A DNA stretch of 64,000 nucleotides, taken from NCBI RefSeq assembly GCF_902713615.1, contig NC_052164.1, positions 69,787,830 through 69,851,829 of the forward strand. Reading direction: 5' to 3'. Shown in pieces: positions 39,236 through 43,937 of this stretch. Both the position numbers and the translations under genes were made by a program. Numbering within the stretch: the first letter of the stretch is position 1; each line of letters opens with the position of its first letter. The notes below the pieces were generated by a model that saw only the letters and a list, made by a program, of their open reading frames with translations, was not told the DNA's origin and did no database searches. Origin of the DNA: Scyliorhinus canicula. Taxonomy: Eukaryota.

Positions 39236-40793
39236 GACTTATAAAAGCTAGTCTCAGTAATGGTGACCATGGAACTATCATCGCTTATTGTAAATAATAG
39301 TGGCTCACGAATGTCCTTTAGGGAAGGAAATCTGTCATCCTTCCCTGGTCTGGCCTAGAGTGGCTCCAGACCTACAGTAATGTGGTGGACTCTCAACTGC
39401 CCTCTGGAATATTCAGTTCAAAGGCAATTAGGGAGGGGCAACAAATTCTCATTAAAGAATAAAGAAATAATAAAAGATGAGCTCAGTTAACTCAGCACAG
39501 ACTGGGATGGATCCTAGAATCTTCTATGTGGCGAACAACTTAGGGCAGCGAGATAATCAAGATAATTTAGATGGATGGTATAAGCATGAGGCTCCTCGTC
39601 CATATTGCTATCCTGTGATCTGGTGCGTGTCGATTAGGGAACAGATCCGACTCTGCTCTTTAGCTCTCCAGTGTCCCATATCCTGCTGATTCTCACTATC
39701 TAAGCATAGTCAATTTAATGGACCTTTTTATGAGGTACCAGAGGTGCCTGTTAGATGATGGATGTAATTTATTCAGGAAAGGAGAGGAGAGAAAACTGAA
39801 CAGTTAAAAAGAATACGTAACCTTAAGCATTCATTCTAGGGCAATGTCACAAATGTTGAAGCAGACACAACCCTTAAGGTGGAGAGATACTGAGCTGTAC
39901 AGTACAGGAAAGATCCCAAGTTTAATCATGGTAGCCAGTGTTTTAGTCTTATATTCAGCCTCACGTCAACTGATTAATAAAATGAAGAATTGTCCTGGGT
40001 TCCTGATTGCTATACAACAATTCTTGGATGCCATAAGAGGGCGGACAAGCTCGACTGTGCTCGCCTGCCACAGTTGCGACGCTTCCTCGTACTCAATGTC
40101 CAGGATCACAAGGGGGGGTAATGGAACGGGATAGGACAATCCCAGGCACCAAGTCAACATCTCCAGAGAGGAAAAACTAACGGAATAAGGCGGGAAAATA
40201 CTCGAGAGGTCAAGGAGGATGTTTATACATTTCTTTTGTTTCAACCCACATAGGTTTATATAACAAAATCATGCTTCTACATTCTAAAAGCTGATGGAGT
40301 CGATAGCTCCATTTCAAATCCTGCTCCCTTCCTAAAAGTTCCTGATTTGTTTTCCTGTGTTTCCATTGTAGCTATGAGAAATAGTTACCTTGAAGTATAA
40401 AGAATAGATTATTAATGGAGCAAGCTGGAATCTCACTGTGTGACAGAGTACAAAACCATTAATGAATTAGCCTAGAGTTAACTTAGACATTAACCAATAA
40501 TTATCATTCCAATTATGTTAAACAATTTATCTTAGCCTATTTCAACGGTCATCTTAACCCATTATGTTACGCTTGTTTATGTTGATTCATTTATTTAATC
40601 TGTTTATTTTAACCTGTTTGACCAGTTTATTTAATGAGTTAAACCTCCTTATGTTTATCTTCTTTTCAACTCATTTATTTAACCCATTTTATTTCAAACT
40701 GTTTAGTTCAATTATTTTAATCCGGTTACTTTAAAATGTTTAACTTAACCCATTTGTTTTTAACTTGTTATTATAATCGATTTACTATGATAA

Positions 40794-41008
40794 GTTTTTG
40801 AAATGTTTTTTATTTTTTATTACTTTATCAGACTTACAAAGCCAGAGCTCATAGTGTGGACAGGGACAAACCCCTAATCCAGCTCATTGCCTGCTCCAAT
40901 AACCAATTCAAATTGAATCCAATTCATGGTCCCCACAAGAGACACACTCCAGATCCAGGCATTACACCTGATCTCACGCTCATCTTAGCCAAAAGGCCGA
41001 GAAGCGAT
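40794..41008 (-). mobile_element. U2 snRNA-headed, polyadenylated SINE-like retroposon
   Basis: Minus strand begins ATCGCTTCTCGGCCTTTTGGCTAAGAT (U2 nt 1-27), then ~150 nt of non-U2 body, AATAAA and an A-rich tail; TGATAA on both flanks. Confidence 0.8.
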
Positions 41009-41562
41009 TGATAACCAGTTTATTTAATTGGATCTTTCAAATGCCCTTGTTAAGACTGGGTGGAAGTCATTCGTATGAACCCAGCGACAAACCAAAAATT
41101 ACACGTTTTTGCCATCATCTTGCAGTTACCAGTCTGGTTTCTATGAGCTCAGTTTCTTAGCTGGAAGCCTTTGCCTGAGCTGCAGTTTGTACAATATTTT
41201 CATGTTGGGAAAATATGGAATTCCTCACAGTTCTTAGAGAAAAAGGAGGGGGAATGAGGGCGCCATTAAAACTACATATGGTATAATTTACAGAAGATTT
41301 GTGAAGTGGCCCTATCTCCCATTTTGCTAACTCTTTCCAGAATCTAGTGAACAAGATGTGAAGCCAGTTATCTGTGATTTTGCTTGATTTACCTTGTGAA
41401 TGGATTGGGGAGAAGCTTTATGGATCCTTCGTCGTGTGGGGTTTGGAACTTGATCCATTAGTCTATGACTGGCTGGGTTGTACATATTCTGTGGAAGCAT
41501 GAATGTTGATGCGCTTTTATCATTTGTATCTTTTCACTGAGTCCTTTTGATTCCATTTCCAG

Positions 41563-42689: not shown

Positions 42690-43937
42690 CATGGGTGATA
42701 CCAGCCCTCGATATGCCTCGCTTGGCATGATCCTGGTCAGCATATTTAAATGAGCCATTAGGCTCATTTAAATACCCAGACACCACTTTCACCCGGTGCC
42801 CGGGAGTCGATGGCTGCGCCGATGAGACCTTGACTGGACCGGGTGCCGTTCACCACTGGTTTTCACAAATGTAGACCAGCCATTATGGCATCTCGGGGGG
42901 TCTTGCAGGCCATTTCAGACCCATGGATGGTTGGGGACAGGTGAGAGTGGTAGCCTGGCACACCCCCTAGCACCGGGGCACCTTGGCACTGGCATGCTGA
43001 GGGTATCTGGTTGACACTTCCAGGGTGCCAGGCTGGCAGTGCCAAGGTGCCCAGGTGCCAGGGTCACATTGCCAGGGTTCTGGGCCGGGGTGCAATTACC
43101 CATTTGAGGGACGGTTCCATGGCCACGGGAAGGTTGGAGGGGTGAAGAGGGGGTGTTCAGAAATTGGGATTGGGGGGGGGGGGGGGGGGGAGGGCCTGAA
43201 ACCAGGTGCGGTGGGGGGGGGGGAGGGGGAGGAGAGATCAGGGCAGCGAGTTAAAATAGTGCCTCGATCTGCAAGGAGCCATTCCTGTTGCCGAGCTCAG
43301 CTCTCCAGTGCATGAAATCCACTAAAGTGAGATCTCAGTGGGGAGAAATTCCCTGAGGCCCAGAAAAATGGCAAAGTGCTGGTGAGTAATGGGATGAACC
43401 TGGGTGCTTCAGCCCGAACGGCTTCTTGTCTGCTAAATCACACCCTAAGTGTTCCCACCAGGGCTGAATAGTGTGTGACTTGTGTTCCCTTTGGGTCAGG
43501 GCATGTAAATGCATCACGTGCCCACAAAAATCGAGAGTGATTCCCATCCTTGATGGCGACTGATTCGCTGGGGAAGAAATTTGCGCTGAAGAGCTTGACA
43601 AGGTGGAGATGTTTTTTAACACTCCACTCCCCACACACGCTCTTTCCAGCCAAGAAGATGGCAGAAAGGAGACCTGCTCCCCCACTTTGGGGAAAGTGAG
43701 CTTGATGGAATGCTGGATGCAGTGGAGGAGATGAGGGACAACCTCTTCCTCAGGGTGGGTGCCAGCTATAGTCGCCAGGTCCTGGGAGCAGGTGGCAGAG
43801 ACGGATAATGCTGCCAGCCTCACGCAAAGGACTGGAAGCCAGTTCCGCAAAAAGATAAATGACTTCCTGATTGGAGTTCGGGTGAATCACCACCTCTGTG
43901 GGCCCTGACATCACCCCTGTCCCTCACTCCTCCCATC

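Follow-up and report, generated by a model that had tools for sequence, protein, structure and literature searches.

At positions 40788 to 41021 of the window, by which we mean the whole 64,000-nt stretch of shark DNA analyzed here, the minus strand opens with the 5' end of U2 small nuclear RNA (snRNA) and closes with an A-rich tail and a short flanking duplication. Such a locus raises the question of whether it is a U2 gene, a chance product of retroposition, or one copy of a mobile family and, if the last, where the remainder of the element came from, how it was transcribed, and what moved it. An earlier note on this DNA had read it as a U2-headed SINE with an unrelated body, or possibly as a chimera between U2 and the 3' untranslated region (UTR) of Keno, a LINE of the Tx1 clade.

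Structure and U2 origin of the copy in the window

The genome's own U2 genes were located with the Rfam model RF00004, at 160 to 192 bits, and were read out for comparison with the window copy (Table 1). The minus strand from 41008 to 40982, ATCGCTTCTCGGCCTTTTGGCTAAGAT, is identical to nt 1 to 27 of these genes, so that the element begins exactly at U2 nt 1, as the earlier note had stated. Two further readings of that note held up. A partial U2 repeat follows the head, in which AGATCAGGTGTA, inside GAGATCAGGTGTAATGCCTG, has a single base change relative to U2 nt 23 to 34, and the branch-point recognition sequence is destroyed there, GTAGTA having become GTAATG. At the place of this diverged repeat, an older form of the family (X, described below) retains colinear U2 nt 22 to 67. 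From the alignment of majority sequences, the GAGCGT filler between head and repeat is probably itself diverged U2 nt 28 to 33 (CAAGTG in U2; CAAGCG in the X form). The U-run of the Sm site reads TTATT in the window copy (40902 to 40898) and TTTTT in the family. The body is ~135 nt long and has GTAAT at its end (40819), overlapped by an AATAAA at 40821 to 40816; this AATAAA and the A-rich tail had both been reported earlier and are present. A TGATAA duplication had also been proposed. TTATCA does stand on both sides of the copy (41014 to 41009 and 40793 to 40788), but the length of 6 nt is probably too short, the likely duplication being AAACTGGTTATCA versus AAACTTATCA with a 3-nt indel between them. 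This is the single copy of the family within the 64-kb window, and it lies 4.7% away from the majority sequence of subfamily A, to which it belongs.

Table 1. Parts of the retroposed copy in window coordinates, in 5' to 3' order of the minus strand
Feature	Positions	Strand	Basis
5' target-site duplication, AAACTGGTTATCA (TTATCA part, 41014-41009)	41009-41021	-	Reading of sequence
Head, U2 snRNA nt 1-27 (5' end and stem-loop I)	40982-41008	-	Identical to the genome's U2 genes; subfamily A majority sequence identical too
GAGCGT filler, 6 nt	40976-40981	-	Reading of sequence
Diverged copy of U2 nt 22-41, GAGATCAGGTGTAATGCCTG	40956-40975	-	Reading of sequence
Diverged U2 nt ~57-141, with a small insertion before the Sm site	40853-40955	-	Local alignment (z = 18.6); Rfam U2 alignment; fold of a near-majority copy
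Stem-loop-III-like hairpin	40897-40853	-	Fold of a near-majority copy and U2 alignments
Strongly diverged, shortened U2 3' part (putative stem-loop IV region), ending GTAAT (40823-40819)	40819-40852	-	Weak homology
A-rich tail	40798-40818	-	Reading of sequence
3' target-site duplication, AAACTTATCA	40788-40797	-	Reading of sequence

The sequence behind the head had been described as ~150 nt of unrelated body, and in this the earlier reading was mistaken. When the subfamily A majority sequence, minus its first 27 nt, was aligned to shark U2 nt 28 to 191, a local score of 33 was obtained over U2 nt 58 to 141, compared with 8.7 ± 1.3 (maximum, 15) for shuffled sequences (z = 18.6). The aligned part takes in TGGGGACCAT, the U-run of the Sm site, and the region of stem-loop III. 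A multiple alignment of U2 with the majority sequences of all subfamilies was colinear from end to end, with body identities to U2 of 71% in X, the nearest, and 65 to 67% in A to D. The Rfam U2 model (positions 1 to 192) scored 63.2 bits on a D copy, 46.3 on C, 42.2 on X, and 36.8 on A. The last part of the body, by its weak homology, would correspond to the stem-loop IV region. Judged by these alignments, the entire ~190-nt unit is shown to descend from U2 snRNA and is a rearranged U2. With the whole body alignable to U2, nothing remains that could be a LINE 3' UTR, and the proposed U2/Keno chimera is not supported. Neither a LINE-derived 3' part nor an insertion in a U2 gene was found; an exact pattern for a copy inside a U2 gene, with the body 3' end followed within 15 to 70 nt by U2 nt ~49 to 65, gave 0 matches.

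An element that is U2 from end to end might also be a working variant U2 snRNA gene. The Rfam U2 model does align to the window copy over its full length (40815 to 41008, minus strand; model positions 1 to 192), and a near-majority copy folds with stem-loop I and the stem-loop-III-like hairpin kept, though only modestly better than shuffles (z = -2.0, compared with -4.5 for real U2). However, the window copy scores only 28 bits (E = 0.01) where the Rfam gathering score is 46 bits, its branch-point recognition sequence is lost, stem IIa is deleted, neither a proximal element nor a 3' box accompanies it, and an A tail and a target-site duplication are present. The base before the Sm-site U-run is A in U2 and G in the family, and it is therefore uncertain whether RNA of the family would bind Sm proteins. 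A functional U2 gene is so improbable here that we give it next to no weight; with its branch-point recognition sequence lost and without a promoter, the stretch is one inactive retroposed copy of subfamily A.

Size, subfamilies, and repeated head capture

When the element was searched against the entire 4.22-Gb genome, 2,608 first-look candidates were obtained; the 40 of these that were scored show 90 to 94% identity and are spread over many chromosomes, almost all of them beginning at U2 nt 1. Motifs were counted in the genome with up to 3 mismatches allowed, each alongside a control pattern. The head-body junction of subfamily A had 1,158 matches, 170 of them exact (control, 22), and a body motif had 3,353 (control, 6). 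A second type of junction, that of subfamilies Y, B, C, and D, had 720 matches (control, 6), and a motif of the older X form had 927 (control, 0). These counts show a nonautonomous, noncoding retroposon family of about 3,400 to 4,300 copies. In 70 copies that were fetched and aligned, the flanks were unrelated and no shared target was apparent. The earlier proposal that an elasmobranch has a family of snRNA-headed SINEs is thus supported, the junction being found in sampled copies with differing flanks and duplications of their own, and the body is neither single-copy nor unlinked to the head. As in the SINEU elements, whose 5' region derives from U1 or U2 snRNA, the unit is short, noncoding, and multicopy, its rearrangements are common to the copies, and its 5' region is U2 (41008 to 40982 in the window copy). 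Mammals are known to have snRNA chimeras that arose as single events (cited in PMC4494074), and the window copy taken singly might be such a chimeric U2 retropseudogene, made by one template switch and with no family behind it. A junction common to 1,158 copies and a body common to 3,353 refute this explanation, to which we assign a negligible probability.

Sorting into subfamilies was based on 40 copies picked on the body motif alone. Subfamily A, with 16 of the 40 copies, consists of head 1 to 27, GAGCGT, diverged U2 nt 22 to 41, and the body. In subfamily Y, an internally deleted U2, nt 1 to 27 are joined straight to about nt 58. Subfamilies B and D carry a fresh U2 nt 1 to 36 or 1 to 43 before a Y element that begins at its nt 12, and subfamily C is a diverged derivative of B or D. 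The rest of the 40 copies were 5' truncated. Form X, recognized via loose ends in public contigs, is nearly whole U2; its U2 nt 22 to 67 are colinear, and the AGATCAAG segment occurs in it as short tandem repeats. The subfamilies are shown to be successive, X being nearly whole U2 and A, Y, B, C, and D having internal deletions; from the multiple alignment, A could be derived from X through two deletions.

Over U2 nt 1 to 27, the majority sequences of A, C, and D are identical to U2, and that of B, which was built from 3 copies, has one difference. X excepted, all the majority sequences built open with a U2 5' end that has changed little or not at all, and additional pieces of the U2 5' end (nt 1 to 27-43) have been gained more than once. 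At L057 (C1:109.27 Mb) and L058 (C1:116.31 Mb), two or three U2 5' pieces are stacked within one 16-bp target-site duplication. The extra U2 nt 1 to 35 or 1 to 30 stands ahead of a slightly truncated element inside that single duplication, and head addition therefore took place at individual insertions as well.

Individual copies differ from the majority at 8.5% of sites in the head, compared with 4.2 to 4.5% in the body. Since copies decay freely, the head more than the body, the exact U2 head belongs to the source sequences and is not due to selection on copies. We suggest, tentatively and with some doubt, that the U2 5' end and stem-loop I may form a working module that source sequences must keep; this suggestion comes from the unchanged heads of A to D, while the rest drifted to about 65 to 71% identity, together with the repeated capture of fresh 5' ends. 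If true, such a module would point to a general route, dependent on RNA polymerase II and an snRNA head, by which short retroposons spread. This route would then have arisen independently in sharks, with an L1-type partner, and in crocodilians, with a Tx1 partner, and the shark family would provide a second system for learning how promoter-less snRNA SINEs are transcribed.

The copies nearest the A majority sequence are 1.6% away from it, A copies not chosen by likeness to the window copy are 4 to 12% away, and the best matches to a C copy are 94 to 96% identical to it; among these closest A and C matches, no young copies or recent activity were seen. Words of a near-majority copy were found in public runs under three organism codes and from nine studies, all of them contigs and none on record as RNA. 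The flank of one A insertion (L004) was found in contigs from two organism codes. In a search of public runs with the window locus, no run held more than 0.34 of its words.

Two groups of X-type copies were considered and set aside. Ten X copies at C1:188.0-190.0 Mb (L103 to L112), examined as possible source genes, are the same X-type element within a tenfold repeated segment no shorter than 900 bp, with pairwise identities of 57 to 99.7%; their long shared flanks reflect segmental duplication and not independent insertions. L094, L095, and L097 (C16:22.89 Mb, C16:55.63 Mb, and C17:92.91 Mb) have one 5'-truncated X-type element in common and also share its upstream sequence for at least 650 bp, at 94 to 97% identity. 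This shared 5' flank was considered as a 5' transduction and rejected, because a 400-nt flank occurs only at these three places, as in a low-copy duplication.

Insertion marks, transcription, and mobilization

All sampled copies have A-rich tails of variable sequence, some with a T-run before the A-run, and 31 copies have clear target-site duplications of 10 to 19 bp (median, 15). In these 31 duplications, A was found at +1 in 24, at +2 in 23, and at +4 in 22, and T or C was found at -1 in 20. A 3' A tail together with target-site duplications is the mark of LINE-type retroposition, and the duplications fit L1-type target-primed reverse transcription at TT/AAAA-like sites, with the reservation that calling boundaries beside an A tail may add to the A signal.

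A different partner would be a site-specific, Keno-like LINE of the Tx1 clade that moves the family, the head and promoter having been gained by insertion in U2 genes and the window copy reflecting relaxed nicking at a U2-like TTATCA. For crocodilian SINEU, mobilization by Tx1-Mar has been proposed, and the targets of Keno are U2 genes (PMC4494074). The U2 pieces added in the shark family always run from nt 1 to nt 27-43, and 3 of 56 copies have TTATCA in their duplication zone, compared with 0.34 expected. That excess, which bears on the relaxed nicking put forward in the earlier note, is small and post hoc, drops to 2 of 55 once the copy that prompted it is left out, and is measured against a genome-wide control and not against AT-rich target sites; we do not uphold the proposal. 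The flanks of the 70 copies contain no shared target of the kind preferred by Tx1-Mar (a trait of the crocodilian families, not a definition), and duplications of 10 to 19 bp with an A-rich start fit L1-type nicking. In addition, no copy was followed by the rest of U2 in the exact-pattern search, and no U2 promoter precedes the A junction: an exact search for the U2 proximal element linked to that junction gave 0 matches in the genome, its pattern being narrow, since an old source gene may have decayed. A tolerant scan of the 70 copies found no U2-type proximal element or 3' box where real U2 control genes gave both; it is narrow too, and a decayed old source gene could be missed. We regard mobilization by a Tx1-clade LINE as improbable and prefer an L1-type partner.

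Runs of T lie inside the unit, T4 at nt 15 to 18 and T5 at nt 107 to 111 of the majority sequence, and 38 and 39 of 42 copies, respectively, keep them intact. By the reasoning used for crocodilian SINEU, such runs argue against RNA polymerase III. A canonical SINE nonetheless comes into question, with an internal polymerase III promoter that evolved inside the U2-derived unit. In its favor, the stem-loop-III region of subfamilies B, C, and D contains GGTTCGCCCC, B-box-like at 7 of 9 defined positions, and a T-run precedes the A-run in many tails. The internal T4 and T5, however, are kept in about 90% of copies, no A-box-like motif was seen by eye near the 5' end, and subfamily A reads GGTTTG instead of GGTTCG. 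A canonical SINE has A and B boxes and no internal polymerase III terminator; this combination was not found, and we consider transcription by polymerase III improbable.

Overall, it is very probable that the window holds an inactive subfamily A copy of a family that derives from whole U2, was transcribed from outside by polymerase II, was mobilized in trans by L1-type machinery, and received its heads by template switching. In such a scheme, a few source loci would be transcribed from an outside promoter, and polymerase II is the most likely enzyme because polymerase III would terminate at the T4 and T5 runs and the unit showed no internal promoter. An L1-type LINE would use the A-rich 3' end in trans for target-primed reverse transcription at TT/AAAA-like sites, and new U2 5' pieces would be joined on through template switches of the reverse transcriptase to U2 snRNA. 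A search for the partner LINE through its L1-type ORF1 (PF02994) gave 4 weak matches in the genome, at 31.8 to 34.6 bits, and the locus examined as a lead (L114) was without a long open frame.

Relation to known elements and to the U2 genes of the genome

SINEU-3 of crocodilians consists of the 5' 32 bp and a middle 83 bp of U2 followed by a poly(A) tail, and about 1,600 copies are known (Kojima 2015, PMC4494074). About 90% of these lie in one Mariner element, pointing to Tx1-Mar, and the transcription of snRNA SINEs without an internal promoter was stated to be an open question (PMC4494074). Judged by this published description, SINEU-3 is the closest known relative of the shark family. In both families, the whole unit is an internally deleted U2 snRNA with a poly(A) tail, oligo-T runs stand inside it, no internal promoter is recognizable, and the copy number is similar. 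In contrast to SINEU-3, which sits in one Mariner target, the shark copies are dispersed and have L1-like duplications. The shark family also has an older, nearly whole-U2 form and several subfamilies, and its host is a cartilaginous fish, so that the two lineages are about as distant as jawed vertebrates get. SINEU-1 and SINEU-2 (PMC4494074) resemble the shark family in the repeated 5' addition of U1 or U2 5' pieces, both in subfamily founders and in single copies. They differ from it in the non-snRNA 3' half of SINEU-1 and the U1 head of SINEU-2, only U2 having been seen in the shark family.

Mammals have L1-made snRNA retropseudogenes and U6/L1 chimeras (cited in PMC4494074), in which the reverse transcriptase of a LINE has likewise copied an snRNA; these show target-site duplications along with an A tail or a template switch. 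Those are independent one-offs, whereas thousands of shark copies share their rearrangements and therefore came from propagating source sequences. Keno has in common with the shark family the involvement of U2 sequence, but nothing in the shark element derives from a LINE, and the exact-pattern search detected no copy within a U2 gene. FLAM and FRAM are free Alu monomers derived from 7SL RNA, which has an internal polymerase III promoter where U2 is without one. Like the shark family, they come from a cellular RNA that is small and structured, have lost an internal part of it, end in an A-rich stretch, and are mobilized in the L1 manner.

In the literature searched, no snRNA-derived SINE was reported from cartilaginous fishes, and such SINEs were described there only from crocodilians. 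The shark family is an snRNA-derived SINE in a cartilaginous fish, an added family of a known type. It seems to use an L1-type and not a site-specific Tx1 partner, and it offers a series of subfamilies from nearly whole U2 to internally deleted forms. The repeated capture of U2 5' ends recurs in it, making it an independent system for comparison with crocodilians. Its interest lies in this subfamily history and in the question of how transcription occurs.

Two copies reach the Rfam U2 gathering score of 46 bits, one of subfamily D (L059:278-484; 63.2 bits) and one of subfamily C (L055:289-483; 46.3 bits). Since some copies pass this threshold, automatic annotation of shark genomes may count retroposed copies as U2 genes. 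In the canonical U2 genes of this genome (L031 to L036), the upstream region from about -65 to -35 (positions ~1430-1470) contains a common element, …GCTGTAAAARAGGGA…GCATATG…, and a common 3' box, GGGGAATTTCAAA…AAAAACAG, follows ~9 nt past the coding end (positions 1700-1725). Variant U2 genes (L037 and L039 to L042), scoring 160 to 180 bits, form tandem arrays at C26:12.68-13.13 Mb and C20:74.9-75.06 Mb. The array on C26 has a spacing of ~970 bp and many sequence differences, and its upstream region is unlike that of the canonical U2 genes on C5, C15, and C18. Elsewhere in the window, at 42963 to 43065, a GC-rich near-palindrome gave weak matches to microRNA precursors on both strands (mir-1263, E = 0.09 and 0.17; mir-96, E = 0.5) and is probably just an inverted repeat.
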